Assembly (NCBI GenBank): GCA_937625935.1
Contig: OW569380.1
Coordinates: forward strand, 310,001 to 374,000
Source of the DNA: Tetramitus jugosus
Lineage: Eukaryota; Protista; Heterolobosea
Length of the DNA stretch: 64,000 nucleotides
Direction: 5' to 3'
Shown here: piece after piece, positions 16,503 to 61,818 of the stretch
How the letters are laid out: every line of letters starts with the position of its first letter
Position numbering within the stretch: the first letter of the stretch is position 1
The notes under the pieces: generated by a model
Databases searched by the model: none
Seen by the model: the letters and a program-made list of their open reading frames with translations, nothing else
What the model was told of the DNA's origin: nothing
Position numbers and translations under genes: made by a program

Positions 16503-16696
16503 TATTTGTTGGTCTTTGTTTGATATTGTTGTTGTTTGTTTGGAGGGATCAAATCGTGTTTGCTTTTTTTATTTTGGCTTTTGGCGGGTGCTACTTTTTG
16601 CCGATGTCTCTCCAGCTGCGGGTGTGTGATCAATCCCTGTGAATTTCACAGGAAGAAGATACTTTGCAGAGTTTTTGTGCATCTCGTGTGCAGAAA

Positions 16697-18571: not shown

Positions 18572-18640
18572 CAATAGTTCAGAGAATAAAAAGTTTATCA
18601 CTGTAGTTTTTTATATAATGCAGAATACAATTCAATTTGC

Positions 18641-29120: not shown

Positions 29121-30264
29121 ATGTCCACAACAACAACAACAACATCACTGCTCCCATTGAGCATGTCTTCAGTGACATCCATTGATGGATTGACTCAATT
29201 CTACAATGAATTCATCTCATTTAACGCAACAAGTCATTTCACTTGTTATCAAGGAAGAAGTATGCCTCAATATTTGGCCAATTGCTCCACATTGCACGAG
29301 ACTGGAGTGTATTGGCCAGTTGTCATTGTCAGTTTTATCATTTGTCACATGTTTGAATATGTGGTGAGACAATTGTCCTATAGAACAAGTGTTTGGAAGT
29401 CGATGGACCCTGTTGAATCTGTTCGTTGGCACAACAAGTATGTTAAAGCATGCTTTTGTTTTTTCGTTTGTTTGTTTGTTGTGTCGAGATTTTTGTTTCT
29501 AACACTCTTTATTATTTGATATCAAATACAATAATAACAATCATAATCATACGAATCATAACAACAAATCATAACGAATCATAACAACAAATCATACGAA
29601 TAGAGTGGTGAGTTATGTGCATGCATGGATCAGTACTATACTCGTTGTTCATGCTCTGCTCATGGAACCACACACATGGAGAGATGCATGCCACGCCTAT
29701 GCCCCTCGTTATGAACTCGTTCTCGCAATCTCTGTTGGTTACTTTTTATTTGACTTGTTCTTCTTTTTGAGGAACAGAAAAGTGTTTGGAGACAATACGA
29801 GCATGGTTGTTCATCACTTGGTGTGCATCATTGCCATCACCTATTGTGTCGCCTATCGTGTCGGTCTCTTTTACAACATGTGCTTGTTGTTTACGGAAGT
29901 GACCACCATTTTCTTCCATCAACAATGGTTCTTGAGTGCGATTGGATACAAGAATGGAAAGCTCTATCAGTTGAATGGTCTGCTGTTTTGGATATTGTTC
30001 TTCTTTTGTAGAGTTGTGTGGTGCTTTTTGCAAAATGTTCACTTGTATGTGTTCTCGTATCAATTTGCATTCGCACCCTACATTTTCAGAGCACCTATCG
30101 TCACGCCTAGTATTCTCTTCTTTTTGAACCTGTACTGGTTCATCATCATTACCAAGAGAGTGGTTCAACATGGTGGTAAATCACCAAACAATGACAACAA
30201 GTCTGCTGGTGACATGAAGAAGCAGAGGCAGCAACAAGAGGAAGAATCAAAGAAGGATCAATAA
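29121..30264 (+). CDS. TLC-domain (TRAM/LAG1/CLN8) membrane protein, TMEM56/TLCD4-like, 2 exons
   Basis: Intron 29438-29603 (GTATGT..TAG). Motifs VSYVHA, SVGYFLFDL, MVVHH, LFTEVTTIF, NGLLFWILFFFCR, LNLYWF..I. Confidence 0.9.
29530..29602 (+). repeat. Short imperfect tandem repeat inside the TLC-gene intron
   Basis: About 2.5 copies of a ~23-24 nt unit, acgaatcataacaacaaatcat(a), directly before the 3' splice site. Confidence 0.7.
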
Positions 30265-42000: not shown

Positions 42001-42308
42001 CACAATCTATCCCGAATGAACAACAACAAGTGAAACAGCAAGGCAATAATGACACATGTACGGGATCAGCTGATATGATAACAGTCAAGCCATCAGCATC
42101 CAAGATTTTACAGCGCATGAACAAGAGAAACAGGGGAGAGTCGAGTACCACTGCAAACATTCCTTTCACGAATCATCAGCCATTGATTGTGAATCGACAT
42201 TCCAACAATCCATTTGCAAGATCTATCAACAACAGCAAATCCAATATTGTTCATACAGATGACACCAATAAGGATCACAAGAAGGACTTGTTTGACATCT
42301 TTAGTTAG
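36071..42308 (+). CDS. DNA2: DNA replication ATP-dependent helicase/nuclease DNA2, 2 exons
   Basis: Intron 40424-40523 (GTTTGT..AAG) reconstitutes Walker A GMPGTGK|TS. Nuclease motifs PDYLLSAT...CLR, LEEVIWSPMNGLKGIID, ELKSGR, HEAQLLLY; Fe-S Cys CNYC..C. Helicase motifs DEAGQ, VGDHHQL, QYRMN, TVDRFQGKDK, RMNVAMTRAK. Confidence 0.96.
36120..38060 (+). repeat. Dense in-frame trinucleotide microsatellites (ACA/CAA/CCA/AGT/AAT/GAT) in the DNA2 5' region
   Basis: Visible runs encoding poly-T, Q, P, S, N, D and H. Confidence 0.9.
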
Positions 42309-42472: not shown

Positions 42473-44062
42473 ATGAGCTCTTATTTCTCGCCATTTTTTT
42501 TGAGTGTCATCTTGTTTGCATCCATCTTGTTCTTGTCATTGGCTGTCCATGCTGTGCAATGTGACTCTCTTCTGACAAGTACTACTACTACTACTGCCAC
42601 CACTACTGCCACTATTTCCACTGCCACCACCAACAGTGACAATGATTACTTTTTGTGGAGTGATGAGAATGGACAGAGTTGGGTCTTCTTCTCTGGTGGT
42701 ACAAGTAAACCAGTGGATCTCTACTGGGTGTGCTACGCGGCAGAGGACAACATTGAACGTGTCGTCCAATGGATCACCAACTCTACAGCACACAACAGAG
42801 TGCCCTACATTCATTCCTATTGTTTCGGAGACAATGGATTGAGAGCACCGACTGCTACTTCCAACAGTTATGCATTGGCTGTGCAGTTTGACGAGTCGAT
42901 TGCAAAGGCCATTGGCAACAACTCGGATGCATTTGTCAATCTGGATACAGAGTGGGACGTGGATGAAGTACTGGGTCTCATGAGCAGCGCAGATGGTATT
43001 CAGTGCTTCAAGGATCGTATCCAACGATATCGTACGTATGCACGTCGAACCAGAGTTCTATCCTCGCCTGGTCTCTGGAAAACCGATTCACAGTACACAT
43101 TCTTCTCACAGATTGATCAATTGTTGGATCTGAGAGCCAACTTGTACCACGCCATTAGCAACAATGACACATGTACGTTGCGTACCGTAGATAACACCAA
43201 TTGGCCCAATGCTTACTCTCTGTCACAAGTGCTGTCACTGTGTCAGACCATTATTGGTGATCGACAGAGAATGAACTACTTGTGGAATGATTCCAACAAG
43301 CATTTCATTACGGGTGATATGGCATTGACCAAGTGTGGCTGGGGTGCACAGTATCAAGCCAAAATGATGAATCTATTGGTTGATAACATGCACTGTCTCT
43401 ATCACAACAAGTGGAGAGGAGCCATGTTCCGCAACTCTGCACCACCTAATCCCGATGAGAGAGCAGCTGGCAATTGGAACGAACTGGGATTCGTGTACAG
43501 TGACAACAATTATGCACGTGAAGCCATGAAGAAGGGTATGGAGAAGGCGTTGAACATGATGAAGAATGGAGTCAATTGTTCAGCGTCCAACGATCCATTC
43601 ACAGTCAAGTTCTCCATTGATCAATCCTCTTGCTCCAACACGTGGGCTCAATTGGCCATTACACCTGCGTATGAAGTGACTGGTGTGACGCTGTCGTACA
43701 AGACGATTACTCGACAAGTGTTGGAAAGAGCGTCCTGGGGTCCAGAGTACACTGGAGTTGTCAGCAGCATTGACACCAACAGTTTTGTTGTGGCCAATAT
43801 TACCAAATATTCAGGAGGATACTCTGTGATTCGCATCCAATGGTTGAACAGCACAGCCACTCAAGTATTGCTCGAGGATGTGGGCACACCTGCTGAGGAG
43901 GAGAATGTTGTTGCCACTTCTTCTTCTTCTGGGAGTGGTGGAGAATCCAGTTATCCAAACGGAGGGGACTCCAGTCAACCAAGTTCTGCTTCTTCCGTAC
44001 TCGGATCCTTGATGTCGATCCTGATGTTGGTTGTCATCGCAATTGCTTTTGGAACTGCATAA
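42473..44062 (+). CDS. Secreted, probably GPI-anchored putative glycoside hydrolase (TIM-barrel-like) with C-terminal beta-sandwich
   Basis: Signal peptide from ATG 42473 (MSSYFSPFFLSVILFASILFLSLAVHA), Thr-rich linker, alternating beta/alpha core with VNLDTEWD, KHFITGDMAL and WRGAMFR. Then a Trp-containing ~90-aa beta domain, a Ser/Gly spacer and a terminal hydrophobic tail. Confidence 0.7.
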   Translation: MSSYFSPFFLSVILFASILFLSLAVHAVQCDSLLTSTTTTTATTTATISTATTNSDNDYFLWSDENGQSWVFFSGGTSKPVDLYWVCYAAEDNIERVVQWITNSTAHNRVPYIHSYCFGDNGLRAPTATSNSYALAVQFDESIAKAIGNNSDAFVNLDTEWDVDEVLGLMSSADGIQCFKDRIQRYRTYARRTRVLSSPGLWKTDSQYTFFSQIDQLLDLRANLYHAISNNDTCTLRTVDNTNWPNAYSLSQVLSLCQTIIGDRQRMNYLWNDSNKHFITGDMALTKCGWGAQYQAKMMNLLVDNMHCLYHNKWRGAMFRNSAPPNPDERAAGNWNELGFVYSDNNYAREAMKKGMEKALNMMKNGVNCSASNDPFTVKFSIDQSSCSNTWAQLAITPAYEVTGVTLSYKTITRQVLERASWGPEYTGVVSSIDTNSFVVANITKYSGGYSVIRIQWLNSTATQVLLEDVGTPAEEENVVATSSSSGSGGESSYPNGGDSSQPSSASSVLGSLMSILMLVVIAIAFGTA

Positions 44063-44148: not shown

Positions 44149-45017
44149 CAGTATTGTTGATCCGGTAAATCCATGTCGGTTTTTTCCGAAACTTTCACTG
44201 AAAAAACTTTTCGAAGTGCCCTAAAAGTTTTCTGATGTTCCGATTGAGCCAAAAAGTTTTTCTCGAAAGTTTCATTCAACAAACACCCATCGCCAACAAG
44301 AGATGACCAGTCAAGACGAATTGGAGAAGCTCGCAGACTAGTTGAGAGAGCAACACGAGAACATGACAGATGAAAAACTGAGCGACAGAATGTAAAGGCG
44401 TATTTCATGAAGAAACTAAAGAGTACCACTGAAGGGGAGTACAAAGTTGCGTCAGTGCATGCCAAAGCAAATGATGAATATGTCAAAAGCCAGCAAGAGA
44501 TTCTCAAAAACTGGAACCATTGGAGAATTGGAAAGAAACTAAATTCTTGGAAGAGCTCATGCAGTATTCGTAATGGCTTTTGCCTGTCATGCCAATATCG
44601 ACATGTTTTTTGCAGGGAGCTCATGGCGCACCAAGGTGGGTGAAGCCAACATAGAACTTACCAAACCTAGCAAGCAATTATTTTGTGACATCATGATGAA
44701 TCACCTAATCGACCAAACACCCATACACACTGAGAAAAATAATATCCAATTTTGAATATAGTTGTTGTGTTTCGGTCTTCCAAGCTTCTTGAGGGAGGCA
44801 CCATCACATGCGACCTTACTGAATGAACGTAACAATGAATATTGTTGTATGATGTTGATATCATTCGTTGATTTATTCGTGCACCATTTTCATAAATTCT
44901 TCCCTTGGATGAAAGTCTTAGGATTTTTTGTTGGTAACTTTCATTGAAAGTTTGAACGAATTTTTGGAAAGTTTAGCGCCAAGCGATCGACATGGATTTA
45001 CCGGATCAACAATATTG
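44149..45017. repeat. ~870-bp segment bounded by 30-bp inverted repeats (possible non-autonomous element or inversion relic)
   Basis: 44149-44178 cagtattgttgatccggtaaatccatgtcg is the reverse complement of 44988-45017 with 1 mismatch. A second inner pair, 44189-44203 and 44939-44953, also has 1 mismatch. Confidence 0.75.
44303..44643 (+). pseudogene. Decayed coding-like fragment inside the inverted repeats
   Basis: Reads MTSQDELEKLAD*LREQHENMTDEKLSDRM* and continues in another frame (MKKLKSTTEGEYKVA...). Protein-like composition broken by stops and a frameshift. Confidence 0.35.
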
Positions 45018-45447: not shown

Positions 45448-46266
45448 ATGAAACTGTTCATTGTTTTGTTTTGTCTCCTTGCCTGGGCTACTCTATTGCA
45501 TGGTAAGTCTATTAGACGTGTTAGAAATATCAAGCTCCAGTGTGGTACGTTCACTTGCGTCACTGGAGAAGTGTGTTGCTCCAACAACTTGATTGGCCCA
45601 TCTTCCGTGTGCTACAATCCCAATGTGCTCACTTGTCCGGCCGATCAATTCCAATCAGGAAAGAATTGCTTGTGTGGAAAGAATACTGGATGCTGTAAGG
45701 GCAATTGCTTCAACACCAATGATGCATTCTGTGATACTACTACAGGACAAATCAAGATAAAGCCACTGGGTATCCAGTGTGGTCCTCTCAATTGTATCAT
45801 TGGAGACAAGTGCTGCTCCAACAATGTTGTCGGAGGAACCTTTAGATGCTACAACTCTGCTACTGCTACGTGCTTACCTGACGTGTTCATTCCCAGTCAG
45901 AATTGTCTCTGTGGTATCAATGATCGATGCTGCAAGGGAGTGTGTTACGATGCTCGTACGTTCAAGTGTTCTTCTACTGGTCAAGTCGTACTGATCAACC
46001 CTCCTCCTAATCCACCTCCATCTGGTCAGCAATGTGGTCCTTCTCTTCGCTGCACCGGAACAGATCAGTGTTGCTCCAGTAACGTAGTAGGAAATGCATT
46101 TTCATGCTTCAATCCCAATAATCTCTCGTGTAACGCTGATCAATTCAAACCAGCTCAAAACTGTCTCTGTGGCAAAGGAGCTGGATGTTGCAACGGAGTT
46201 TGTTTCAATCCTTCAGATGCTACCTGCAACACATCTACCGGACAACTAGTGTTCATCCCCCATTAA
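45448..46266 (+). CDS. Secreted cysteine-rich protein with three tandem ~75-80-aa repeats (CBM52-like)
   Basis: Signal peptide MKLFIVLFCLLAWATLLHG. Three units of QCG..C....CCSNN..G...C(Y/F)N.....C..D.F....NCLCG....CC.G.C(F/Y)......C...TGQ, with a Pro-rich linker before unit 3. Confidence 0.85.
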   Translation: MKLFIVLFCLLAWATLLHGKSIRRVRNIKLQCGTFTCVTGEVCCSNNLIGPSSVCYNPNVLTCPADQFQSGKNCLCGKNTGCCKGNCFNTNDAFCDTTTGQIKIKPLGIQCGPLNCIIGDKCCSNNVVGGTFRCYNSATATCLPDVFIPSQNCLCGINDRCCKGVCYDARTFKCSSTGQVVLINPPPNPPPSGQQCGPSLRCTGTDQCCSSNVVGNAFSCFNPNNLSCNADQFKPAQNCLCGKGAGCCNGVCFNPSDATCNTSTGQLVFIPH

Positions 46267-46943: not shown

Positions 46944-49900
46944 ATGATTGTGCACTTGAGTAATGGTTCTTCCATCGATTTGTCAAATCGGTATTCTACC
47001 ATAAGTAACTATTGAGTTCAATCCGATAACTTGTGTTGGACACGGACATTCGCTGACTCCCAGGTTTCTTGACACTACACAGAGCATGAATTGACAGACC
47101 AGGATTATGAATCGATCAAGAATGTGATTCGTTCTTCTGCTTCTCATGAGAGAAGGACTGGCCATGTTCAAGTGGATAGCAGTGAGGAGGATGGTGACGA
47201 CACATCTACTACTAGGAACGACAGCAAGGATGAACAACAACAAAGGATTCTGATGATCCAAATGGAGTTCAATGGTCCTGTTCTCACCAGTCGAGGAATG
47301 AAGAAAATTGCTAGAGGGCTCAAGAAGAATAAAACGATTGAAGAATTGACAATTTGTAGTAAGTAAGAACATTCTGTTTCTACTCATTCATTCATCCTCT
47401 CTAGAGGGGAATATAGCTCTGACATACATTTTCTCAATTGTCTCTCTGTCCTACCTCAACGTGTGTATGTAAAGCCAATAATTATGAGTCTGGTAGTTGG
47501 ATCAAGTACTTGATAGAAGCTCTGATGTCCAACAAGACAATCAAACGTCTCTATTTGTATGATTCACTTTTCCCAAGTGATGCAATCGACTACTGGACGA
47601 TTCTTCTTGAAGAAAAGAGCGTGTTGCAATTGTTGGACATTATGAATATGAAACAGTTCACAAGAGAGCAGCTGAAGGGATTTTTCGGCGCAGTTCAACA
47701 TCACACGAATCTTCGAACATTGCATCTAAGAGGTAAGTACTAGAATCCTGTTCGGTTTAACACCATTTGGTTGTAACTTATTGTTGACAATATTTTACGG
47801 ATGGGATTTGAATCAACGAACTAGGGATGAACAATGAAGCACTGGTGTTTTTGGGTAAAGCTCTGTGTGGAAATTCCGTTCTTACGGATGTATTGATCTT
47901 GGACGTTGATGCAAGTATCACTAGAGAAGGAATTGTAAGCTTTTGTGATGAATTCTTAATCTTGGATAACAACAGTAGAGATGTGGGGCAAGACAACGTA
48001 GTTCAACATATCATGTGTCACTTACAAACATTGACCTTTCAAAGTGCGTCACTTAGTGATGACACTGGTGGAAAAGATCTATATAGAGCATTGAGATCTC
48101 ACAAAGGAAACGTGTTGAGTAAGTTGAACACTGTGAACTTGAGCGCTACGATGATCACTCGACCAATCCAATCAAAAATTAATGAGATTTTGAAAGAGAA
48201 GGTGAGGGAAGCACAAAAAACAACGAAAGACAACAATCCTGACCTTACGGTGACAAACGAGGTTATTCAGTCCGTCAATAATCAACCTTCGACCAGCCTC
48301 GAAGTTGTAAGTAAGAGCGCTCAAGCGACCGAGGAAGTTCTCTTAACAACTCCTACTGCAACAACCATTTCTTCAACGAATAATTGTTCCAATCTGGCAA
48401 TGTCCACAAGTCAGATGGTAGAAGATTCTCGCAAATTATTGCGTCAGAATTCGATGAAACAAGAGTTACTCTTATGTAGGCATGATATTACTTCAGTTCG
48501 AGAAGAAACAAACACCTTAATGAGAACGATAATCTCTGAAAAAGATGTGTGGAAACGCGAATTGAAAGTGTTGACCGAGAAGGTCTCAGATTTGAAAACT
48601 CTTGTCAATAATGAACTAAATGAATCAAGAGAGTCAATTGATGAAGATATCGCTGGTATCATGTCCCAGTTCAGAGAATTGAAAACCAAGTTCGAATCAC
48701 TAGACACAGAATTTCGACATCAAATTGAATATCTAACAGAAAAAGTACTGACTACCGAATCCCTTTCTTCCTCCATTGGAGATATTGTTGATGAACAAAT
48801 TAGTCAGGATCGGCATGATAAACTATCAAACCTCGAGGATCAATTGACTAGTCTGGGGAAAACGATGAACAGAGTGAGGGCAGATATTGATCAAATGATA
48901 ACATTGAAAGTGAACAATCAAGCAACCGATGAAAACACTAAGTTAATTGAACAGATAGTAAACGAACGAATAACTAACCTGAAAACTCAATCGAACGAGG
49001 GTATGTTGTTATTGACAGCAAAACAGGACCAATTGTCGGATCAAGTGATTCAACAACAGAATGACATGAAGAAACGAGCTTATCAAGAAAATCGGAATGA
49101 TAATTACCCTCATCGAGAACTGGCTGATATCATGGTCAAAAAGGATCAACTTCCCTTCTTGATCGAAGCACATATGGATAAGTCCTATAAGCTTAGCAAT
49201 ATTGTAAGGACAATGAAACAAGAGAGAGAAAAATGGGAGACAGAATTGGAACAGTGGAAAAGAGAAAGAGTCAAGGATGATCATCAAACAATTCTCTCTA
49301 GATATGATCGTTCAATTCATGACTTAACATTTCAATTGCAGGAATTAAATGATAACTGGGTACGTAGTCAGAATCAAATTCGAATGAATAGTGAAATCTC
49401 TACGATGAGCCCATACCAGGACAAAGTCCATCTGTGGCAGGAGAGAATGAACAATGAACTGGTACTGAAACTGGACAAAGAAGAATATCAGAACAGTGTC
49501 CAGAAGATCGTTGATAGTGTTCAAGAAGAAATTAGAGGAATAAGGGATGACTCAAGACACTCGGTTTCGACAGCCCATTTCATAGAGGCAATGCAAGAAC
49601 TCAAGGAATCATTCACACTCAAAGTATCGTTGGTTGAAGAGGAGTTACTAGGAATCCTTGAGACAAAGTTGGACACTGAAAAATTTAACAGATATGTGAC
49701 AGAGAATGAAAAACCAGACTCCCCCAAGAGTGTTTTGTCCACCTTCTCCGTTGGATCGGGAAAGAAGTCGATACTATCGACAACCAAAGGAACTCCTTCT
49801 CAACAGAAACAATCTTTGACGATGAAGAACCAGATGAAGACCATTCTCTTGGATAATGTTCAAATGAAGATACACATGAACGAGGTGAAGAAAGATATTG

Positions 49901-50391
49901 CCCGGATGGAAGAGAGAACAAACCTTCATCAGTTCTCTCAGTTGTTAGCAGAGAAGTTGTCCGCTGATGATGTGAAACAATTGTTGACTACTAAAATTTC
50001 GAAGATCGAAGCACTGATTAAAACTGAGTTGTCTCAGAGTATGCAGTCAGTTAGGGAACAATTTGCCACACAAGAACTCCTGAACAGTCGAATGAACCAA
50101 ATTGAAGGGAACGTAAGTGAGAAAATCCAACTGGCACAACTCGTGGAGGATTTGAACCAAAGGTTGAACAACCAAAGAGAACACAATGCTCAACTTGAAT
50201 CAGAACTGCACTCAATTGAGAAGAAGCAACACAACCAATGGAATCACGAACTCAATTTGTTGAAACAACAGAATGAACAATTGCAAAAGGACATGGAAAA
50301 AATCCGAACAACTGTCATCGCCAACTCGAGGGAGCCTTCATTCTTCGCCAAGATTCTCTCTTGTTTCGGTGTGTGTTCATGTTTGGGATGA
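46944..50391 (+). CDS. RNI-like leucine-rich-repeat plus long coiled-coil protein, 4 exons
   Basis: Introns 47005-47082, 47359-47474 and 47733-47824 are phase-compatible. Repeats IARGLKKNKTIEELTI, LIEALMSNKTIKRLYL, VQHHTNLRTLHL, LGKALCGNSVLTDV; C-terminal coiled coil; Cys-rich end. Confidence 0.8.
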
Positions 50392-50430
50392 GTAACTTAT
50401 CAATATTCTTAATTTTATTTAGCTTGTTTT

Positions 50431-53400
50431 TTAGTTTTGGGGAGGTGATCCAAGGACAACTTGAACTTGGTGAGCATTACCATCATCAACCAATAAAATT
50501 CTATCGGCATCAGAGGTCTGTAGACCGTCCAATGTGGCTCTGATAGGAACAACATTTTCTTCATCAGTATTCTTAACAAAGTTGATGTGATACTTGCTCT
50601 TTCCAAATCTGTAGTGTACCTTGAACTCCTTCCATTCCTTGCGAGGGCAAGGACTGAACACCAAGTAGTCGCCAGATCTGTTTACACCAATCATTTGTTC
50701 GATGATTAGTCTGTACATCCAACCTGCACTACCAGTGTACCAAGTCCATCCACCACGACCTTCGTGTCCCTTCAGTGTGTACACATCAGCTGAAACAACA
50801 TAGGGTTCAACTCTGTACTGATCCAATTCTTGCTTTGTTCTTGTGTGGTTGATTGGATTCAACATGTCAAACAAGTACCAAGACTTGTTCGCATCTCGGA
50901 GCTTAGTGTACGCCCAAACCATCCAGATGGCAGCATGAGTGTATTGACCACCGTTCTCTCTAACACCAGGTGCATAGCCCTTAATGTATCCAGGGTTCAA
51001 ATGAGACTTTTCAAAGGGAGGATCAAAGAGTTGAATGAGCTTCAAGTCAGGACGAACCAGTCTATTGAACGCATTCTCCATTCCCTGTAGCGATCTGTCT
51101 TTTCTTGTTGCACCAGAGATGACTGACCAACTCTGCGGCAATGAATCAATCTGGCACTCATCGCACTCCTTGGATCCCAATGGTTCTCCATTGTCAAAGT
51201 ATGCTCTTCGGTACCATGAGCCATCCCAGGCATTTTCTTCAATGTTTTCACTGAGACGAGTCTTTTGTTCATGAGACAATTGAATGAATTCTTCATCATG
51301 CTTCAACTCGGCAACCGTTTCAAATCTCTCCATCACATGATAGAGGAAGTACGCCAACCAAACTGATTCACCCTTTCCGTGAATACCAACCAGGTTCATA
51401 CCGTCATTCCAATCACCACAACCCATCAATGGCAAGCCATGAGAGCCAAACTTGAGACCATAACGAATACTTCTCAAACAGTGCTCGTACACAGAGGCAG
51501 AAACATCGCTGATACGAACAACATCATAGTGACTCTCTTCTCCAACGCTCAATTCATGACCAGTCACAAATCTGCACTCAACATCCAGAATGCTCAAATC
51601 ATTGGTCGTCTCAATATAGTATGCCACAGCCAATGGCAGCCACAGATAATCGTCAGAGAACGTTGTACGCACACCTCTGTTTGAAATTGGATGCCACCAA
51701 TGGCACACATCACCCTTCTCATACTGATGTTCACAACATGTGATAATTTGTTGCTTGAGAATGCTTGGGATGCTACCGCAAACAGCAATAGAGTCTTGGA
51801 GCTGATCTCTGAAACCGAATGCACCACTGGATTGATAGAATCCGGATCGACCCCAAATTCTAGCGGACAACACCTGGTACAACAACCATGAGTTGGCCAA
51901 GACATCAACAGAATCATCTGGTGTCTCAATCTGAATTGTGCTCAGTGTTCTCGTCCAGAATGACTTGACTCCCTTCAACAATTGTCTCACAATCAAATTG
52001 GATCTGATGCGCTCAATGAGGTCCATGGCTTGATGCTTGGATCGGTGAGCACCTAAAACAAATGCAACTTCAATGGTTTGACCACTCTCTACGGTAATTG
52101 GCACCATGATTGCACCGCAAGGGTCAAGCGCAGCACCCACAGTTCCACTCAAATGAGTTCTCTCCATGGCAGCAGGCTTGGACAAAGTTCTATTGAATCC
52201 GATAAACTCGGATCTATCACCAGTGATAGTGCACTTGTGACCTACAACGGTGAAGAAACTGACATAGTTGCCAAAGTCGCAATGATAGGCGTTTCTAGCA
52301 AGGATAGCATTGGTGTTGGCAGTCAATTCAACATCCGTAACAATATTTGGAGAGGTTCTGTCTCTCAATTCACCCAATGTCCACTCAACGAATCCACTGA
52401 CAGACAAGTTTCTTGTCCTTCCACTGTCGTTTCTCACCTTGATCAGAATAATCTTGATAGGTTCGTTCTGAGGAACAAATACACGAGTATCAGTGTGAAT
52501 ACCATGATCCTGGTGCTCCCACACGGAATAGCCCATACCATGTCTCACAATGTATGGACTGTTGCTGCTCACTGGCTGAGGCTGAGGAGACCAATACTTG
52601 CCACTGACTTCATCACGAATATAGAAGGCTTCTCCACTACCATCCACAACAATATCATTGTTCCAAGGTGTCAATCTGTACTCATGCGCATTGTCCAACC
52701 AAGTGTAAGCAGAGCCCTTCTCAGAAATGACACTACCAAATTGTTCGTTGGCCAGAATGTTGCACCATGGTTGTGGTGTTGGCTTATTCTTTCCAAGGAG
52801 CATGACATACTCTTGATTCTGCTTGTCGAATCCACCAAACTCATTGCGCATCACAAGACCTCTATCTTCGAGGCTCAATGAAGGTTGAACAATCTTTGTT
52901 GGGGTTACAACATCGTTTGGATTGGCTGTGGTGGTTTCATCTGGTCTCTGAACAAGAGCAGGCACATTGTGGTCCTTTCTGTATTGTCTATTGATTTGAT
53001 CTGTCAATCGACCACCATTATCCGACAAGACAACTCTTGCAACAGAGTACAACAAGATACTCTCAGCTTCATTCAAGTGTTCACCTCTGATTGGGAAGAT
53101 ACCTCCGGACTTTTGAAGCATTTGATGTGTTTCGGCGGATCCACTAATGAGAGACATGATTGCATTCTGCAACTCATCTCTGTAACTCACAGTTTCGTCG
53201 TTCCAAATCACGAAATCACAAATCAATCCCTTGTATCTCATGTAAGTGTGTGCTTGCAACACTTGAGCAATGAGACTAATGTTTTGAACATCACCTATTC
53301 TGACGAGGAGAATTGGCAAGTCACCAGAGATGCCCAATCTCCACAAACCAGTCTGATTCATACGATTCTTTGTAATCAATCCCAATGACGCTCTAAAGTT

Positions 53401-56400
53401 GGCAGAAGAGTACAAGAGGCAACCAGCGAGCTTGGCAAACAATTGTGCCTCAATTTCAGTGATGCCCAACTTGAAGCACAACTTCTCAGAGAACAACCAA
53501 GAATATTCAACCACTCTGTTCGTGCATCTCTTCTTTTGATACTTGGTAATCATCTTCAGAGCTTCTTCACGAGTAAAGGCAACACCAGTCACCAAATCAG
53601 CATGCACAGTCTCTCCTGCTTGCAACTTCAATTGTTGTCTAATGGAAACAACTGGATCCAATGGGAATCCAGAAGAGTTGCTCAATGGACCAATCTCTCC
53701 AGAGAGAGCCAATGGTTGTTGCATGCTGTGACCTCTACCAATAAACTTGAATCGATCTGTTTCGAAACTCATGTCACCCTCTGCGCATCTTGGCTCGTGC
53801 AACAAGAGAATTTGGAAAGCATAGACAACCTGCTCTTTCTCGTCTCTAGGTTGTCTAGAGCACAAAACAGCATTGTAGTCTTCGAGAATCTCACTCTTGA
53901 CAAACAAGTTGCTAAAGGCACGATGAGCAGCATCGACTCTCGAGTGACCCAACACAATCTCACCATATGAGGTCAATTCGAGTCTTCTTGGCTTGGTGCC
54001 TCTGTTGGTCAAGTTGATACGTCTTACTTCGACATCGTCATAAGGAGAAACAGTGACAATGGTTTCAGACAGAATACCGTTCTCATATCTCTTGAATTCA
54101 GCCTTGGCCTGAGAGAACATGGCAGTGTAATTGGACTCTGGAGGAGCCAAGATTGGTGTTGATGTCGTACTCCAAATCTTGTCCTTTTGATCAACATCTC
54201 TCACATAGCAACTGATTCCATAACCGTCGAGTGTAACATCTTCTCTCCATCTAGTGACGGACAGCTCCTTCCATTTGATTTGACCACCACCGTGCACTGA
54301 GACCATGACATGCAATCGACCATTGCTCAACAAGTGAACTTCTGGTGCAGCATACATTTGCAGTCCTTGGTATCTTCGATTTGGAGATGGAAGTTTGTAC
54401 TTTCTATTCATCCATCTCGATGTTTCCTTGGCATTTGGATTGCTGACATAGGGAACCTTTGGAATCTTCTCCTGGAGCAACAGTTCATTGGCGTGCAACT
54501 CTGGAGTGGCGCTGAAACGCTTTTGCATTGGCTTGTCCAACAATGTGTAAGCCAATGCCAACAAACTCATACCTTCGTGATGAGCAAAATAACTTCTAAT
54601 TGGTTGACATGAGACATCGCCTCTCAATCTATGAGGAGTAAAGTCAATCGATTCAATCATACCGTAACCGCCCATGAATCCCATGCTGTTCAACTTTTGC
54701 AAGTTTTGACATGAAGGAACAGGAAGAACCATGAGTGCCAAGGCACTGGCATATGGAGCAATCACCAGATCGTTACTCAAACCTCGCTTGAGACCCAATC
54801 CAGGGACACCAAATGGTCCATATTGATAGACAAGAGTGGCATCCATCATGTTGAATGCACTCTCAGAGATACCCCACGGAACCTTCTTTTGTTCACCGTA
54901 TTCGATTTGACGCTTCACTACAGAGTAGTATGTCTGATCCAACAAGGTGCCAGGCACAGTTGGCATCACCAACAGAGGCATCAAATATTCAAACATACTG
55001 CCGGACCATGACAACAGAGCGTGCTTGTTTGGAGCAACAGATGTCAACAATCTGCTCATGCTGAACCAGTGCTTCACAGGGAATTGACCCTTGGCAATAC
55101 CGACATAACTGCACAGTCTAGCCTCAGAGCAGAACACATCATAATAGGATTGATCGAGATAATTGTGATCCACATTGTAACCAATAGCAATCAAGTTTCT
55201 GGACTGGTTGTACATGAATGTGAAATCTTGTTCAGAGAAATCGTTGGAAATGGATGCCAAGTTGTTAATTGTCTCCAAGCGTTCACGTGAAATGGCAGCT
55301 GCTCTGTTGGCAGCCTTCTCCAACTCACTGTACCACGATGATGGATCAGCTGACTTGCCCTTCTTGGACGCCAAAACAGATGGAAGTTGAGACAAGAGTC
55401 TATAGGATGCAACAGTGACGTTATTAATCTTGTTCAATGCTTCCTTGAGCTCGGAATCAACATCGGATGGCACTTGGTCCAACAGAGAACCAAATGGCAA
55501 CACAGTAGCAATCTCATCGACAAAGTTCTTCAAATGTTGTTCAAACAATTGAGCAAACACCAAGAGTTGTTGTTCTCGAGATCCCTCCACATTTTCAATC
55601 AAATCATCGTCCTCATCAACCATAATTTCTTCTTCATTTTCGTCTGATGACCTCTGCTCTTCCACAGCATTCATCAACTTCTTGGACAATTGAGCAGCAC
55701 TTGATTGCAATCTATTCAACCATTCGACAACATTCTTAATCTTTGCATCAGATGGCATGGAAGCAATCTCCTTCAACATGGATTGGATAGTAGAGGTAAT
55801 GTCTTCTGCATTGTAGTACACGACATCATCGTCGCTCTTCAATGGCTTCTTCATGATTTCCAAGATGCACAGCAAACTGTCCTTCAAACCAACCTTGACT
55901 TGCTCAGCGACAATTGGTCGATCAGCAAACTCCAAGAGACCAGTCTTCAACAGAACCAACAGACCTACCAAATTACCAGAGTCGACTGCAGAGACATACT
56001 TTGGCAACAATGGCTTCAGATTCGAAGTATCATACCAATTGTAAAAGTGACCCTTGTATCGTTCCATCTTGCCCATGGTTTCCAACGTCTTTGCAATTCG
56101 TGCAATGGCTTGACCACTTGTAATATAGCCAAAGTCCCATGCGGAAATGTTGGCCACGAGAGCGAAACCAATGTTGGTTGGTGATGTTCTTCTGGCGTAC
56201 ATTGGCTTAGGGAACTCTTGATAATTGTCCAATGGCAACCAATTGTCTTCATCTCTGACAAATGTCTCAAAGAATCTCCATGTTCTTCTGGAGAGTACAC
56301 GCAAAAAGTCATGTTGCTCCTCAGTGAGCTCCTCTGCTCTCTCTGTCTCTGTTGTTGTACTTGTAACTTGCAATGGCTTGCTCAACCACCAGGCAATCAA

Positions 56401-59400
56401 TGGAGAAGCGGCCCAAACAGGCACCAACAACAAGACAATAGACAAGTTGACAAACAATAGATACCAGGAGAAGGAAGCTGCAGCAGCAGAAGACTTTCCA
56501 AACAAGGTATTAAACACCAGGGACAAGGCAACAAATACGGCGACCATGACACCAGACCACATGGAACGAGCAAACTTGGCCATTTGCCCTGTAAATTGAG
56601 TGGCAGCTGCGGTACTGGTTGTCCACTCGAGCAATTGAGTTCTGGTCACAAACAGACGCATCAACACGCGAATAATGGCATCCACATTGTTGAATGCTTC
56701 GAATGGCAGGAAACACATGGTCAAACCAAAGTCCATCATTCTTCTCATCACACTATATCTCACATTCTCCAAGTGTGTCTCCAGAGTAATATCTTCTGAT
56801 TTATGAGTCAACTGATTGAACAAGTCGATAATCAATGGCAAGATCCAGTTACTGGTCACAGCAAGAGTCGTAATGAGTGGAACGCGTGTTCCAAATGAAG
56901 CACCACTCAACCAACCATACATGAGCACGAGGACCATTGCCAACGGAACGAGAGATCGTCTCAAATTGTCAAAAATCTTCCACTTGGATAGAGTGGTCAA
57001 CGGATTGCGCACCAGTCCCTTGGACAAGCTAGGCACATAGGGCATGACCCATGAAGAAATTTGCCAATCACCTCTGACCCATCTGTGCTTTCTAGAAATG
57101 TCAGTTGCATACGATGAAGGATACTCTTCAATCAACTCGACATCACTCACCAGACCAGATCTCACATAGCAGCCTTCCAACAGATCGTGAGACAAGATTC
57201 TATTCTCTGGGAACTTGTCGCCCAACACTTGCTCAAACACATCGACATGATAGAGACCCTTGCCAATAAAACTTCCTTCACCAAACGCGTCTTGATACAC
57301 GTCACTGACTTCCTTGGTGTACGGATCGAGTCCACTGTCCATGGAATGAATCAGAGCAAACAATGACTTGTGTGCACCAGTGAGACCAACACTGACTCTT
57401 GGTTGCAATAGACCATAACCAGTCACGACACGATCCTTGGATGGATCATACACTGGCACGTTCAATGGATGAGAAGCTGTTTCAATCAATCGTCTAGCTG
57501 CGTCCGATGGCAACAATGTGTCCGTGTCCAACGTAATGACATACTGGATGCTTCTGAGAATAGAAACATCACCGACAATGCACGAGAATGGATCAGGTGA
57601 TCCACCACGCAACAAATTGTTAAAGTTGAGTAATTTTCCTCTCTTACGCTCCCAGCCCATCCATACGCCTTCGGATGGATTGAAGATGCGAGGTCGATGG
57701 AACAGGAAAAAGGTCGAAGCACTACCACTGCTGTTTGGATACATGGTGTTCAATTCTTCGATTCCTCTCTTGGCAGCAGCCAACAAGATGTCATCCTTGT
57801 CGGTTGTCTCTGTCTTTGCGTCCATAAAGTCCGTAATCAAACCAAAGAAAATATTTCGATCTCTGTTAACCAAGTATCTTCTCTGCAAATCGGCAATCAA
57901 CTCTTCGACACCTTCGACACTGGTGAGCATCGTAGGAACAACGACCATGGTTCGATGATCGTCTGATATGCCCTGCTTGTGATAATCCATCTTTGGCATG
58001 GCTCTTGGTCCAACGAGATGAACAATAGCAATGTTGGTGAGTGAGACAGCCAATTGACTGCCCACGAGAAACAGTGCAGGCAGGAACAAGAAGGGAGAGA
58101 ACAGTACTCGAGTGATCAAGTTGCTACTACTATTGTTGCCACCAAAGAGAGACACTCCTGATCTCATGAGCAAAATCAACACTGTCAACACATAAATGAC
58201 CATAATCATCAGAATACTGAACAAGAAGCCAGTGACGGGCACGTTGGTAAAGTGTTGAGTGTGACCAAACATGCGACCCACACGGATGGACCATGGCAAC
58301 TTGTAGTCTTCTCTCTCGTGCAACATGAGAGAACCACGCTCATCCAACAACCAATAACCAATGTGACACTGTCTCTTGAGCATTTGCAACTCGAATTCCT
58401 CTTGTTGCTCTTCAGCGGAAGACTCGTGAGATGTCTTGGATGAGGATGACGACTGTTGTGTCTTTTGCTCCTTTTGCTTCTTGTTGTTGTTGTTGTTGTT
58501 GCCCTTGTTCTGTTCATCATACTCTTTTTGAGCACGAATGGCACACTTGAGTGCAGCCTGAGCCACATCCTTTTCATTCATCTTGTTGCGATGAGCAATT
58601 CTCTCAATTGCATGCCTACAACTGTCTCTGCTGTCAAAGTCTTGCAGCACGTAGACACCACTCGGATCTCTTCTCAGAATGGATTCAGTCAATGACAAAT
58701 TCTCCACAAAGTCCTTCCAGCTGAACACATTGACAAATCGGAGGGATTGAATCGAGTTTCGAATCGTAATCTGATCCACGTGATTCGAATGTCTCTGCGT
58801 ACGACAAATGTTGTCCACATCGAGTCCCTTGGTGCTCAACTGTTGTTCGAGCCAAGTGTTAATGACGGACAATAGAGGATCACTGCCCTGTAATCGCTGA
58901 CTGATTTGCAACACAAAAGAGTTGGAGATTTTGGGATCGGACTGAGACATTTGAAACAGTGTTTGAATCACGTCCTTGCTGCTCTTGTCTGCTGCGACCA
59001 ACAACTTGTCTGCCCAGGCATCTGCCAGATTGCAGTCCTTTCGACGATTGATAATCTCATCGGCCACTCGTCTAATATTCTCCAGTAGGCCCAATCGAAG
59101 CATAATGGGAATACCCCACAGTTCACCAATGTTCAACGGTGCAACCGTCTGATATGCCTTGACAAACTGGTAGACATTGTCCTGTGAGATTTGACCATTG
59201 ACCAGTGAGATGAGCTCCAGAACGAGTCCATAGATTCTAGGAAGGCCAGCCGACTCTGTGTTCAACAGTTTGGGCATCTCCTTGGCAAACCCTGGTGGCA
59301 AATGCTTCTTGGCCATGTGAATATGCTCATTGATCATCCAAAAGTTGTCCACGAGCCATTCATCAGTCGATGTGATTCTTCTGTTGGTCATGATGGCCTC

Positions 59401-60030
59401 AGAGATGATATCGTAGGCTTGATTGAGCACTTGGACATTTTCATTGAGTCGTTCAATCAACAGTGGAGTGGTTGATTGGAGAGAACGAGTGACACGTTTC
59501 CACATGAGACCCAGGACATCACTTGTGATGGATGATTGTTTTTCACTACTTGGTGTAGTTGTTGTTGAGGTTGTAGAGATGGACGATGATGATGATGATG
59601 GTGTTGTTGTTGTTGTGCCTCTCTCTCTTAAAAATTGTTCATAAATGTTGTTGCTAGCAATGTTGCTATTGATGGGTGCAGTAGTAGAGTTTCTTGTTGT
59701 TGCAGTTGTAGAACGAGTAGACTGCTGCTGCTGCTGTTGTTCATCACGATGATCCACCAACTCTGGATACATGACTGTTTGATGCAAATTGGCCAATGTC
59801 AGAGCATAGTGAGACAATTGAGCCAAACTGACTTCATTGGCATTGGGCACTGGTTGATTGATACCACCACCACTTGCACCACCTGAACTGCTACTGCTGT
59901 CAATGCCCAACAGTTCATCCATTTCGACACTAATGGACTTTGCTCTTCTCATGCTACTGGTGTTGGGAGTCATGGGAGTACCAGTGCTAGTCATTGAATT
60001 TAGATTACCACTACTGTTTACTGTTAACAT
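50431..60030 (-). CDS. cgs: Cyclic beta-1,2-glucan synthase homolog (GT84 + GH189-type cyclase + GH94 phosphorylase), 3199 aa, intronless
   Basis: N-terminal EWLVDNF, LPRIY, ELWGIPIMLRLGLLEN, D..SRD.CRHAIE. GT core WERKRGKL, VITLDTDT, SHDLLEG, RKHRWVRGDWQ; six TM segments. Cyclase region RTSPTNIG, DSGNL, SEARL, SWSGSMFEYLMP, WGISES, FGVPGLGLKRG. GH94 GFYQSSGAFGFRDQLQD, GDWNDGMN, RENGGQYTHAA, GWTWYTGSAGW. Confidence 0.96.
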   Translation of the reverse strand: MLTVNSSGNLNSMTSTGTPMTPNTSSMRRAKSISVEMDELLGIDSSSSSGGASGGGINQPVPNANEVSLAQLSHYALTLANLHQTVMYPELVDHRDEQQQQQQSTRSTTATTRNSTTAPINSNIASNNIYEQFLRERGTTTTTPSSSSSSISTTSTTTTPSSEKQSSITSDVLGLMWKRVTRSLQSTTPLLIERLNENVQVLNQAYDIISEAIMTNRRITSTDEWLVDNFWMINEHIHMAKKHLPPGFAKEMPKLLNTESAGLPRIYGLVLELISLVNGQISQDNVYQFVKAYQTVAPLNIGELWGIPIMLRLGLLENIRRVADEIINRRKDCNLADAWADKLLVAADKSSKDVIQTLFQMSQSDPKISNSFVLQISQRLQGSDPLLSVINTWLEQQLSTKGLDVDNICRTQRHSNHVDQITIRNSIQSLRFVNVFSWKDFVENLSLTESILRRDPSGVYVLQDFDSRDSCRHAIERIAHRNKMNEKDVAQAALKCAIRAQKEYDEQNKGNNNNNNKKQKEQKTQQSSSSSKTSHESSAEEQQEEFELQMLKRQCHIGYWLLDERGSLMLHEREDYKLPWSIRVGRMFGHTQHFTNVPVTGFLFSILMIMVIYVLTVLILLMRSGVSLFGGNNSSSNLITRVLFSPFLFLPALFLVGSQLAVSLTNIAIVHLVGPRAMPKMDYHKQGISDDHRTMVVVPTMLTSVEGVEELIADLQRRYLVNRDRNIFFGLITDFMDAKTETTDKDDILLAAAKRGIEELNTMYPNSSGSASTFFLFHRPRIFNPSEGVWMGWERKRGKLLNFNNLLRGGSPDPFSCIVGDVSILRSIQYVITLDTDTLLPSDAARRLIETASHPLNVPVYDPSKDRVVTGYGLLQPRVSVGLTGAHKSLFALIHSMDSGLDPYTKEVSDVYQDAFGEGSFIGKGLYHVDVFEQVLGDKFPENRILSHDLLEGCYVRSGLVSDVELIEEYPSSYATDISRKHRWVRGDWQISSWVMPYVPSLSKGLVRNPLTTLSKWKIFDNLRRSLVPLAMVLVLMYGWLSGASFGTRVPLITTLAVTSNWILPLIIDLFNQLTHKSEDITLETHLENVRYSVMRRMMDFGLTMCFLPFEAFNNVDAIIRVLMRLFVTRTQLLEWTTSTAAATQFTGQMAKFARSMWSGVMVAVFVALSLVFNTLFGKSSAAAASFSWYLLFVNLSIVLLLVPVWAASPLIAWWLSKPLQVTSTTTETERAEELTEEQHDFLRVLSRRTWRFFETFVRDEDNWLPLDNYQEFPKPMYARRTSPTNIGFALVANISAWDFGYITSGQAIARIAKTLETMGKMERYKGHFYNWYDTSNLKPLLPKYVSAVDSGNLVGLLVLLKTGLLEFADRPIVAEQVKVGLKDSLLCILEIMKKPLKSDDDVVYYNAEDITSTIQSMLKEIASMPSDAKIKNVVEWLNRLQSSAAQLSKKLMNAVEEQRSSDENEEEIMVDEDDDLIENVEGSREQQLLVFAQLFEQHLKNFVDEIATVLPFGSLLDQVPSDVDSELKEALNKINNVTVASYRLLSQLPSVLASKKGKSADPSSWYSELEKAANRAAAISRERLETINNLASISNDFSEQDFTFMYNQSRNLIAIGYNVDHNYLDQSYYDVFCSEARLCSYVGIAKGQFPVKHWFSMSRLLTSVAPNKHALLSWSGSMFEYLMPLLVMPTVPGTLLDQTYYSVVKRQIEYGEQKKVPWGISESAFNMMDATLVYQYGPFGVPGLGLKRGLSNDLVIAPYASALALMVLPVPSCQNLQKLNSMGFMGGYGMIESIDFTPHRLRGDVSCQPIRSYFAHHEGMSLLALAYTLLDKPMQKRFSATPELHANELLLQEKIPKVPYVSNPNAKETSRWMNRKYKLPSPNRRYQGLQMYAAPEVHLLSNGRLHVMVSVHGGGQIKWKELSVTRWREDVTLDGYGISCYVRDVDQKDKIWSTTSTPILAPPESNYTAMFSQAKAEFKRYENGILSETIVTVSPYDDVEVRRINLTNRGTKPRRLELTSYGEIVLGHSRVDAAHRAFSNLFVKSEILEDYNAVLCSRQPRDEKEQVVYAFQILLLHEPRCAEGDMSFETDRFKFIGRGHSMQQPLALSGEIGPLSNSSGFPLDPVVSIRQQLKLQAGETVHADLVTGVAFTREEALKMITKYQKKRCTNRVVEYSWLFSEKLCFKLGITEIEAQLFAKLAGCLLYSSANFRASLGLITKNRMNQTGLWRLGISGDLPILLVRIGDVQNISLIAQVLQAHTYMRYKGLICDFVIWNDETVSYRDELQNAIMSLISGSAETHQMLQKSGGIFPIRGEHLNEAESILLYSVARVVLSDNGGRLTDQINRQYRKDHNVPALVQRPDETTTANPNDVVTPTKIVQPSLSLEDRGLVMRNEFGGFDKQNQEYVMLLGKNKPTPQPWCNILANEQFGSVISEKGSAYTWLDNAHEYRLTPWNNDIVVDGSGEAFYIRDEVSGKYWSPQPQPVSSNSPYIVRHGMGYSVWEHQDHGIHTDTRVFVPQNEPIKIILIKVRNDSGRTRNLSVSGFVEWTLGELRDRTSPNIVTDVELTANTNAILARNAYHCDFGNYVSFFTVVGHKCTITGDRSEFIGFNRTLSKPAAMERTHLSGTVGAALDPCGAIMVPITVESGQTIEVAFVLGAHRSKHQAMDLIERIRSNLIVRQLLKGVKSFWTRTLSTIQIETPDDSVDVLANSWLLYQVLSARIWGRSGFYQSSGAFGFRDQLQDSIAVCGSIPSILKQQIITCCEHQYEKGDVCHWWHPISNRGVRTTFSDDYLWLPLAVAYYIETTNDLSILDVECRFVTGHELSVGEESHYDVVRISDVSASVYEHCLRSIRYGLKFGSHGLPLMGCGDWNDGMNLVGIHGKGESVWLAYFLYHVMERFETVAELKHDEEFIQLSHEQKTRLSENIEENAWDGSWYRRAYFDNGEPLGSKECDECQIDSLPQSWSVISGATRKDRSLQGMENAFNRLVRPDLKLIQLFDPPFEKSHLNPGYIKGYAPGVRENGGQYTHAAIWMVWAYTKLRDANKSWYLFDMLNPINHTRTKQELDQYRVEPYVVSADVYTLKGHEGRGGWTWYTGSAGWMYRLIIEQMIGVNRSGDYLVFSPCPRKEWKEFKVHYRFGKSKYHINFVKNTDEENVVPIRATLDGLQTSDADRILLVDDGNAHQVQVVLGSPPQN

Positions 60031-60930
60031 GATGTTGTGATATTCTTCGACTTCTTCTTCTTATTGTATATTTTATTATTGTTGTTGTTGATTTGGTTGT
60101 TGTATATTTTTGTGTGTGATGTGATGTATAGATGGAGAAAGAGATCTAAAGAGTGTAGTGTGTGTGTAATACAATAAACAACAAACAAGTATCTTCTGTT
60201 TTTTGAAACTTTGTAAAGAATCAAAAAGTTGTAGTAGTTTTGTGAGTTGTTATTGTGTATGGGGAGGTATGGATTGTGTTGTTGTTGTTGTTTTAAGGTT
60301 GGTTTTTCGCGAAGGGTAAAAAAACAAAAAGGACTCGTGGACGATCTCTGCAGGTGCTCTCACAGCGGTGTTTTCACTACACGTGCTTTCAGCGATGTGC
60401 AATCTTCAATCAAGCTCTGTGTTTTATTTACACAATGGTAAGGGTGCAGCAGACAAGAGAGAATCGATAAAAATAGTGTTTGGCGACTGTGATCAGTGGG
60501 ATTACAATTTTTCACGATGAATTTTTTGTTGCTCCGGATAGGATCATGCGAAATTCCCAGGATCATTCCGACCCCTGAACGAAATTTTTTGGTATAAAGA
60601 AGCGTTGTGTGATCTGTTTTGGATGCTGGAAGAGCGCCATCTACAACTCTTTTCAAGAAATGGTGAGAGGAACTGTACACCATGCAATGAATTGAGACAT
60701 CGGGTCTACCTCATGAATGGTTTTCAGAGAGGTAAATTCGTGTTTTGGCAATCTATCCGTCGCCAATCTAGAATTGGATATCGTGATGTCTCGTTCCAAT
60801 CACCTCTTCACACTACGTAATTGAACTCTTGAAACTCACACAACAACTTAAAACTTGTGTGGAAGTCCAAAAAAACAGCTGAATGGAAGAAAAATACATT
60901 TTCTCAGAGATAGAACAACACTTCTCAAAT

Positions 60931-61818
60931 TTATTGAAACAAGGATCGTATCTTGAAAAACAAATACAATAAACAAAAAACAACCAACGCCACAATAATC
61001 AATATCAAACATGACTTTTGTATCCAATTCCTCCACTCCATTCGACTCAATACTCGACCACCTTGATGCAACTCATCATTTGTCAAATCAATATTGCCAC
61101 GTATTCTCTCCAGTATGCCTCTCTGATCCACCAACGTTCCCATAATGTTCATTCCTGTTTGTTCAATGTGATTGGCCACTTGTATCGTATGATGCAATGT
61201 TTCATTAGAGTTTTTAATCAATCGTTTTGTTTCTTTTGACGCTTTTTGTTTCTTGTTATTGCTATTGTTGCTTGTATGATAGTCCAATAAATCATCATCA
61301 CTATCATCACTATCATCACTATCACTATTATAACGATAACGATTATTATTATTGTGATCATGTTCTGAATCATCATAGTGAGTGTGGTGGTGGTGATCGT
61401 GCATGAGAATGGATTGTAATGTGTTTTGATATTCAGTCTTCAATGATTGTAACCGTCTCTTGTGTTGATCATTGATTCTTTGTTTCCAATACTTTAACAT
61501 GTCATTATTGTTACTATTATTATTATTGTTATTGTTATTGTTGTTACTATTGAGTCGAATGGTTGATAATTGAGTTTCCATGTTTTGAATCGTGCCATCC
61601 AATGAATCAAATTGTCTCTTTATTTTACGTTGCAGTGTTTCAAATGTGTCATTGTTACTACTACTACTACTACTACTATTGTCATTGTTGAGAGACACTT
61701 TTTTCAATTGTTGGATACAATCGGAGACTGATGTACCAATTTCTTCAAATTCCATGTCATAGGCCTCCAACATGTCATGTATGGCACTTGAATAATTAGC
61801 GGTCGTTGATGATGACAT
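60931..61818 (-). CDS. VTI1: Qb-type SNARE, Vti1-like
   Basis: N-terminal helical bundle (EAYDMEFEEI...) and SNARE motif SNETLHHTIQVANHIEQTGMNIMGTLVDQRGILER...GGRVLSRM; C-terminal TM; poly-N/D insertions. Confidence 0.85.
   Translation of the reverse strand: MSSSTTANYSSAIHDMLEAYDMEFEEIGTSVSDCIQQLKKVSLNNDNSSSSSSSNNDTFETLQRKIKRQFDSLDGTIQNMETQLSTIRLNSNNNNNNNNNNSNNNDMLKYWKQRINDQHKRRLQSLKTEYQNTLQSILMHDHHHHTHYDDSEHDHNNNNRYRYNSDSDDSDDSDDDLLDYHTSNNSNNKKQKASKETKRLIKNSNETLHHTIQVANHIEQTGMNIMGTLVDQRGILERIRGNIDLTNDELHQGGRVLSRMEWRNWIQKSCLILIIVALVVFCLLYLFFKIRSLFQ

Follow-up and report, generated by a model that had tools for sequence, protein, structure and literature searches.

Cyclic beta-1,2-glucan synthases (Cgs) have so far been treated as bacterial enzymes that serve the production of periplasmic glucans. 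In Cgs/ChvB of Agrobacterium tumefaciens (8RF0/8RF9; PMC10901819), in Cgs of Brucella and in rhizobial NdvB, one polypeptide carries, in this order, an N-terminal domain (NTD), transmembrane (TM) helices 1–2, a GT84 glycosyltransferase, TM helices 3–6, a cyclase and a GH94 phosphorylase. The purified bacterial enzyme makes rings from UDP-glucose on its own. In A. tumefaciens Cgs the primer is bound by the NTD and Y694 is the autoglucosylated primer tyrosine; phosphate shortens the product, every soluble domain is cytoplasmic, and the rings leave the cell by a separate ABC transporter (PMC10901819). The cyclisation domain of T. italicus CGS (8WY1; PMC10834661) is the founder of family GH189, and a 2025 survey describes the clan, GH162 apart, as widely spread in bacteria (PMC12102758).

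The literature that we searched, which took in few subscription journals and in which a passing mention may exist, contained no report of a eukaryotic Cgs and, as the original prediction had supposed, no characterised eukaryotic enzyme of this kind. Searches for Naegleria together with 1,2-glucan, or for Acrasis kona together with glucan, found nothing, and heterolobosean genome papers (their text and part of their supplements) do not mention Cgs. For the product, we found a single report from a eukaryote, on a cyclic beta-1,2-glucan of Chlorella pyrenoidosa (Suarez 2008, cited in PMC11842490), for which the citing passage names no enzyme; no green-algal Cgs was among the matches listed in our searches. 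What is new here is that a known bacterial enzyme is kept as an old, selected gene in several protists, where it is probably regulated.

Domain organization of the T. jugosus protein

The window analysed here is a stretch of 64,000 nucleotides from the heterolobosean Tetramitus jugosus (contig OW569380.1). Its minus strand, on which all features of the gene lie, carries at 50431..60030 a single uninterrupted, intronless ORF of 3199 aa, for which a complete Cgs/NdvB/ChvB architecture had been predicted from the letters. ORF, Pfam and phmmer analyses bear this out. Against the PDB, phmmer aligned the protein colinearly with A. tumefaciens Cgs 8RF0/8RF9 in three stretches (E=0, 1803 bits) and with the T. 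italicus cyclase 8WY1 at 4.5e-120; Pfam placed a Glycoamylase domain at residues 1630–1836 and, for GH94, two supersandwich stretches and a catalytic domain at 2691–3115, while an NCBIfam scan matched no model. All 10 motifs named beforehand were recovered to within ~20 nt.

Residues 1–188 (59467..60030) form a eukaryotic low-complexity extension with Ser, Gln and Thr runs around the start of the conserved NTD, which itself spans residues about 189–600 (58231..59466; E 3.8e-33 to 8RF0 60–358). By hydropathy, two hydrophobic segments (603–621 and 638–656; TM helices 1–2, 58063..58224) precede the GT84 glycosyltransferase (56971..57960, placed by residue mapping to A. tumefaciens Cgs) and four follow it (1026–1044, 1050–1068, 1160–1178 and 1191–1209; TM helices 3–6, 56404..56955). 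This agrees with the six TM helices that had been predicted and with the two-before, four-after layout in the cryo-EM structure of A. tumefaciens Cgs (PMC10901819). A weak seventh hydrophobic segment (1755–1773) falls within the cyclase barrel. The GH189 cyclase, a transglycosylase, was delimited by residue mapping at 54436..56310. It has an insertion of ~200 aa, the putative counterpart of the long four-helix insertion of T. italicus, and its sequence match to 8WY1 would fit an (alpha/alpha)6 barrel. The remainder, 50434..54435, is the 1,2-beta-glucan phosphorylase region (GP1, a Rossmann-like insert, GP2 and GP3), supported by Pfam and residue mapping.

The NTD, GT84, cyclase and GH94 thus stand on one polypeptide in the order of the bacterial enzymes, and on every feature testable in the sequence the gene belongs to the Cgs family. 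It differs from A. tumefaciens Cgs in being nuclear-encoded and ~380 aa longer, with the low-complexity N-terminal extension, its kinase-type motif and other inserts. The setting differs as well: T. jugosus has no periplasm, no glucan-modifying gene lies nearby, and no ABC exporter of the NdvA/ChvA/Cgt kind was found among the window ORFs scanned or beside four eukaryotic copies.

Conservation of catalytic residues and selection

Residue numbers from PMC10901819 and PMC10834661 were transferred to the T. jugosus protein via the PDB alignments. In GT84, D734, R795, D835, D837, D949, R983, W984 and R986 correspond to A. tumefaciens D527, R586, D624, D626, D739, R773, W774 and R776. Y904 (57319..57321), in the IF1-homology loop, keeps the position of the primer tyrosine Y694, and its glucosylation would follow by homology. 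The cyclase retains S1347, D1350, the acid/base E1636, W1675, E1681, the nucleophile E1723, Y1735, H1817 and H1818. Among these, E1636, E1723, E1681, H1817 and H1818 are the equivalents of T. italicus E1356, E1442, E1400, H1536 and H1537; T. italicus W1394 and Y1456 are also matched identically, and the activity demonstrated for the T. italicus domain would extend to the T. jugosus protein. In the phosphorylase, D2742 and the catalytic D2876 correspond to A. tumefaciens D2393 and D2528. Hence 20/20 mapped catalytic, primer and pocket residues are kept and, together with E3025 of the ENGGQYTH motif, they are invariant across this protein and nine eukaryote-type homologues.

The four Cgs domains are under strong purifying selection: in two species pairs, a simple Nei–Gojobori count gave dN of 0.09–0.20 for all of them, with dS of 1.9 or saturated. 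The cyclase core and the phosphorylase are among the best-conserved parts across the eukaryotic copies.

Genomic context

The gene lies in a eukaryotic nuclear setting, as had been proposed, and the flanks, codon use, orthologues in other eukaryotic genomes and an intron in one homologue all concur on this point. The flanking genes had been called an intron-containing LRR gene and a SNARE gene. The former (47181..50391, plus strand, 5' end approximate), the convergent downstream neighbour with a coiled coil, does have GT–AG introns (donors at 47359/47363 and 47733, by eye) and LRR-like repeats; the LRR call was made by eye, and Pfam gave no match. The upstream gene (60931..61818, minus strand) has a C-terminal TM segment and a V-SNARE_C match at E=8.5e-5, under the gathering cut-off, so that it is best termed SNARE-like. 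The 39 nt that separate the Cgs gene from its convergent neighbour (50392..50430) hold, on the Cgs strand (minus), an AATAAA poly(A)-type signal ~10 nt past the stop codon. The rest of the window encodes aquarius, Dna2, ELMO, Plus-3, SNAREs and a eukaryote-type sphingosine-1-phosphate lyase.

The gene's codon use tracks that of neighbouring host genes (correlation r 0.85), whereas 79 bacterial Cgs loci average 0.08 and reach 0.61 at most. Host-style homopolymer runs of Ser, Gln, Thr and Asn interrupt the protein. The T. jugosus assembly comprises 55 scaffolds, 26.3 Mb, at 41% GC. Contamination is all but ruled out by the eukaryotic flanks, the host-like codon use and the poly(A) signal. That a bacterial gene was misjoined into a eukaryotic assembly, as the missing intron and a GC content of 44.7% against 40.6% for the window might suggest, is practically untenable, since the closest relatives sit in independent eukaryotic genomes, GC3 falls inside the range of the neighbouring genes, no ribosome-binding site was seen by eye ahead of the ORF, codon use, homopolymer inserts and AATAAA are those of a host gene, and an assembly built from HiFi and Hi-C data makes a chimera unlikely. 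We regard the locus as almost certainly a genuine old eukaryotic gene.

Near-identical sequence is present in 20 public runs from 14 studies, groundwater DNA included. In eight soil metatranscriptome runs, 73–77% of sampled words of 52000–60500 were found, and public RNA runs contain the gene as contigs only; several homologues come as contigs whose length is that of a transcript. The metatranscriptome matches suggest that the gene is expressed, with the proviso that RNA runs can contain DNA.

Eukaryotic relatives and phylogeny

Homology searches were run on parts of the protein, and four protein searches were read from their best 120–150 matches, limited by length. Among the matches listed, the closest relatives are not bacterial. 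Over the full alignment, identity is 65% to Acrasis kona (AKO1_015066), 56% to Naegleria fowleri (FDP41_002565) and N. lovaniensis (C9374_012379), and 55% to both Willaertia magna (ABK040_003749) and the CRuMs flagellate Diphylleia rotans (EukProt EP00002 P003193), compared with at most 47% for the bacterial copies tested. The database labels of these orthologues read 'hypothetical protein', 'chitobiose phosphorylase' or '6 TM protein'. Four further eukaryote-type sequences (P0001, P0003, P0006 and P0007) are 55–74% identical; datasets with such copies include SRR29541317, SRR29605814, SRR8654739, SRR32315873/890 and JGI 3300043818. The four protein searches listed no further named eukaryote. 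The Naegleria and Willaertia genes are intronless and stand amid eukaryotic neighbours, and a 44-nt GT–AG intron is seen near the start of one homologue (L006, 255–298; by eye against a spliced relative). The orthologues share the clade and architecture of the T. jugosus protein; their gene neighbourhoods do not. Enkurin, Exo70, Rrp40 or CCDC24-like genes (the last a weak match, E=1.5e-4) adjoin some of the other eukaryotic copies, and the idea of a conserved glucan gene cluster was dropped, because the neighbours differ in Naegleria, Willaertia and Acrasis.

In the phylogeny with bacterial Cgs that had been proposed as a check, the ten eukaryotic sequences are set apart together by a long branch of ~0.5 changes per site, with an SH-aLRT of 100, in both the 77-row and the 40-row tree. 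The single eukaryotic clade was recovered both with LG+G4 and with a mixture model. With the mixture model, a tree of 16 rows that was rooted on seven bacterial sequences splits the clade three ways: P0006 stands by itself, P0003 and P0007 join Diphylleia (99), and the T. jugosus protein groups with the named heteroloboseans (88). Joining P0003 and P0007 to the heteroloboseans with Diphylleia excluded was rejected by the AU test (p=0.0014), the group having been picked after the first tree. The trees were quick searches without bootstrap, and in them, with bacterial rows selected by similarity to the query, no bacterial sister of the eukaryotic clade was resolved and the rooting is provisional. 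A bacterial genome scan gave five loci, none of them sister to the clade, so that no donor can be named. With the patterns used, no Cgs homologue turned up in viral contigs, and there is therefore no sign of a viral vector.

The original prediction had this protist acquire the gene horizontally. As worded, this is not supported. The bacterial affinity of the family is upheld, and its much greater diversity among bacteria makes a single ancient transfer to eukaryotes the simplest reading. A recent, species-specific transfer can be rejected: the single old clade common to Acrasis, Naegleria, Willaertia and Diphylleia, together with synonymous sites at or near saturation, implies that any transfer long predates T. 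jugosus. The Diphylleia copy may reflect deep ancestry, eukaryote-to-eukaryote transfer or a contaminated transcriptome, and it bears on whether the gene was transferred, or was already present, deep among eukaryotes.

A kinase-type motif in the N-terminal extension

A hydrophobic-R-R-x-x-S-hydrophobic motif lies in the variable extension ahead of the conserved NTD (M27 to I33, 59932..59952, minus strand), with S32 as the candidate site of a basophilic kinase. The full motif recurs in P0001, Acrasis, Willaertia and both species of Naegleria. In Diphylleia, P0003 and P0007 it is replaced by looser R-x-x-S variants, and in P0006 it is missing. The motif was found in 0/139 full-length bacterial copies, searched over their first 110 aa, for which the chance expectation is ~0.002 per 110 aa. 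We take the site to fit a CaMK/AMPK-type consensus, similar presumably to that at the N terminus of glycogen synthase. To judge from this short motif, S32 may be phosphorylated.

Product and proposed mechanism

Because every tested residue is kept, the chemistry is likely to be that of bacterial Cgs, and the eukaryotic enzyme very likely makes cyclic beta-1,2-glucan, in the cytosol. Amoebae of this clade would then probably make a sugar polymer so far undescribed in them. By homology with the bacterial enzyme, the six-helix anchor would hold every soluble domain to the cytosolic side of the membrane; GT84 would glucosylate Y904 as primer and extend the chain from UDP-glucose; GH94 would use phosphate to trim the non-reducing end, releasing glucose-1-phosphate; and GH189 would cut the chain and close the ring via E1723 and E1636. 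Further steps are more conjectural. With no periplasm to receive them, the rings may stay cytosolic and form a soluble store without reducing ends, to be reopened by an endo-beta-1,2-glucanase, or the store may be drawn down as linear primer chains, followed in either case by phosphorolysis. Through the added N-terminal serine motif, kinases that respond to nutrients or stress could regulate the enzyme, much as in the case of glycogen synthase.

It is conceivable that the eukaryotic clade instead makes a linear beta-1,2-glucan, or that it mainly degrades glucan derived from prey. The long stem branch of ~0.5 changes per site leaves room for such a change, and ring closure hinges on domain geometry. 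We nevertheless consider this quite improbable: GT84 and the primer tyrosine do not vary, nor do the supporting histidines or the retaining nucleophile E1723, and the constraint on GT84 equals that on the other domains.

Biological role

Several non-periplasmic roles had been listed for the enzyme with no choice among them. The evidence leans, tentatively and somewhat short of an even chance, towards a glucose reserve, cytosolic and regulated, as the main role in amoeboflagellates. A tyrosine primer, a UDP-glucose donor and phosphorolysis to glucose-1-phosphate follow the logic of a store, and the added kinase-type site fits metabolic control. The likeness is to glycogenin, glycogen synthase and glycogen phosphorylase, which share these three features and a probable N-terminal phospho-control; the two systems are nonetheless non-homologous, one building branched alpha-1,4/1,6 chains and the other beta-1,2 rings on a single membrane-bound polypeptide. 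A reserve is also favoured by the report that N. gruberi has no glycogen, for which PMC6205838 cites Pittam (1963). Against it, lipid is given in that paper as the principal store of Naegleria (PMC6205838). Mobilisation would moreover call for a ring-opening glucanase, since the bacterial GH94 module is confined to setting the length of the chain and a closed ring is out of its reach. The characterised GH162 glucanase is secreted. In eukaryotes that also carry GH162 glucanases, a Cgs would be a biosynthetic source of beta-1,2-glucan.

The hypo-osmotic function of the bacterial glucans might alternatively have been retained, with cytosolic rings transported to the lumen of the contractile vacuole or of some other compartment, or serving as a compatible solute. 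The function tested in Rhizobiales is adaptation to hypo-osmotic conditions (PMC10901819, PMC11842490), and the hosts and samples come from soil and from fresh or ground water. We find this reading distinctly unlikely: no ABC exporter appears among the larger window ORFs scanned or beside the Naegleria, Willaertia and Acrasis copies, and an osmolyte left in the cytosol would aggravate hypo-osmotic swelling.

A further possibility is that the glucan is made at encystment, as a desiccation protectant or as a component of the cyst wall or plug. The other named heterolobosean hosts form cysts or spores, and Tetramitus itself forms cysts (PMC11106597). A weak GH-A-like candidate also lies within 18 kb; the scores (0.79), however, are at chance level, and the neighbouring genes do not recur beside the copies of Naegleria, Willaertia or Acrasis. 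Delivery to a wall would also have to reckon with a Cgs TM domain that has no export channel (PMC10901819), and a role in encystment appears improbable. That the rings act as cyclodextrin-like binders of sterol, lipid or iron in phagosome handling is very doubtful, for although the hosts are phagotrophs and bacterial cyclic glucans have been tied to raft remodelling, phagosome–lysosome fusion and iron storage, no sequence feature indicates it and the known effects come from exported, often substituted, bacterial glucans.

Should the glucose reserve be the correct reading, a further kind of eukaryotic storage polysaccharide would have come to light, run by one polypeptide. It is tempting to go further and suppose that Heterolobosea, including N. 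fowleri, keep their glucose in reserve as cyclic beta-1,2-glucan under kinase control, and that the gene entered eukaryotes a single time, so early that Heterolobosea, a CRuMs flagellate and a third lineage of flagellates all have it; taken as a whole, this proposal is rather unlikely to hold. The conserved eukaryotic clade implies beta-1,2-glucan production by common soil amoebae, and it allows a direct test of which glucose store, if any, glycogen-less Naegleria keeps. We know of no human counterpart of the Cgs family, and the N. fowleri enzyme would be a candidate drug target if it is important for survival or encystment.

A partial parallel exists within the discobans. Leishmania, which is not known to make glycogen, stores a beta-1,2-mannan by means of transferase/phosphorylases that were acquired horizontally and are of bacterial origin. 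This mannogen system differs from Cgs in that its polymer is built of mannose and its GT108 enzymes are small, soluble and unrelated in sequence.

Gene structure and neighbours of the Cgs homologues

On L006, a JGI contig, a GT-AG intron of 44 nt (positions 255–298, read by eye), which contains a branch-like motif, lies close to the start of the Cgs homologue. The first exon of this gene was overlooked by the gene caller, and the start of the resulting eukaryote-type protein, P0003, is therefore wrong. The Cgs copy of the Naegleria-like metagenome contig L087 (2–9462) is annotated as two ORFs of 1715 and 1438 aa that overlap by 4 nt, a division probably owing to an assembly frameshift. Enkurin is arranged tail-to-tail with Cgs both on this contig (9618–9977) and in N. 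fowleri (L001, 17614–18599), while the neighbours of Cgs in Willaertia, Acrasis and the window are other genes. Two further protein matches, P0465 and P0477, are Cgs-like fragments from assembled metagenomes, archaeal by database label only (Methanospirillum and Methanotrichaceae).

Other features of the window

Inverted repeats of 30 nt (97% identical, 809 nt apart) flank a short ORF at 44149–45017; this element looks like a non-autonomous DNA transposon. A Cys-rich protein with three internal repeats (45448–46266) had no Pfam match and appears to be secreted. The ORF at 42473–44062 likewise had no Pfam match; its ESM Atlas features tend towards clan GH-A hydrolases (GH26/GH17) with a score, 0.79, that is at chance level, so that membership of this clan is a lead only. 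The Dna2 helicase/nuclease (36071–42308), which carries a long N-terminal extension, is encoded by one ORF of 1464 aa and another of 597 aa, with 50 nt between them; a short intron probably divides the gene.

Several lipid-handling genes are clustered at 13223–21672, namely those for sphingosine-1-phosphate lyase, a START domain (17813–18571) and TspO (20767–21672); a TLC domain (29605–30264) is additional to this group. The CBS-domain protein at 15377–16009, in which three CBS repeats were seen, is possibly an AMPK gamma-like subunit or a portion thereof. The exact sequence of the metallophosphoesterase at 16697–17548 was found in JGI contigs, and the same organism is therefore present in public environmental assemblies.
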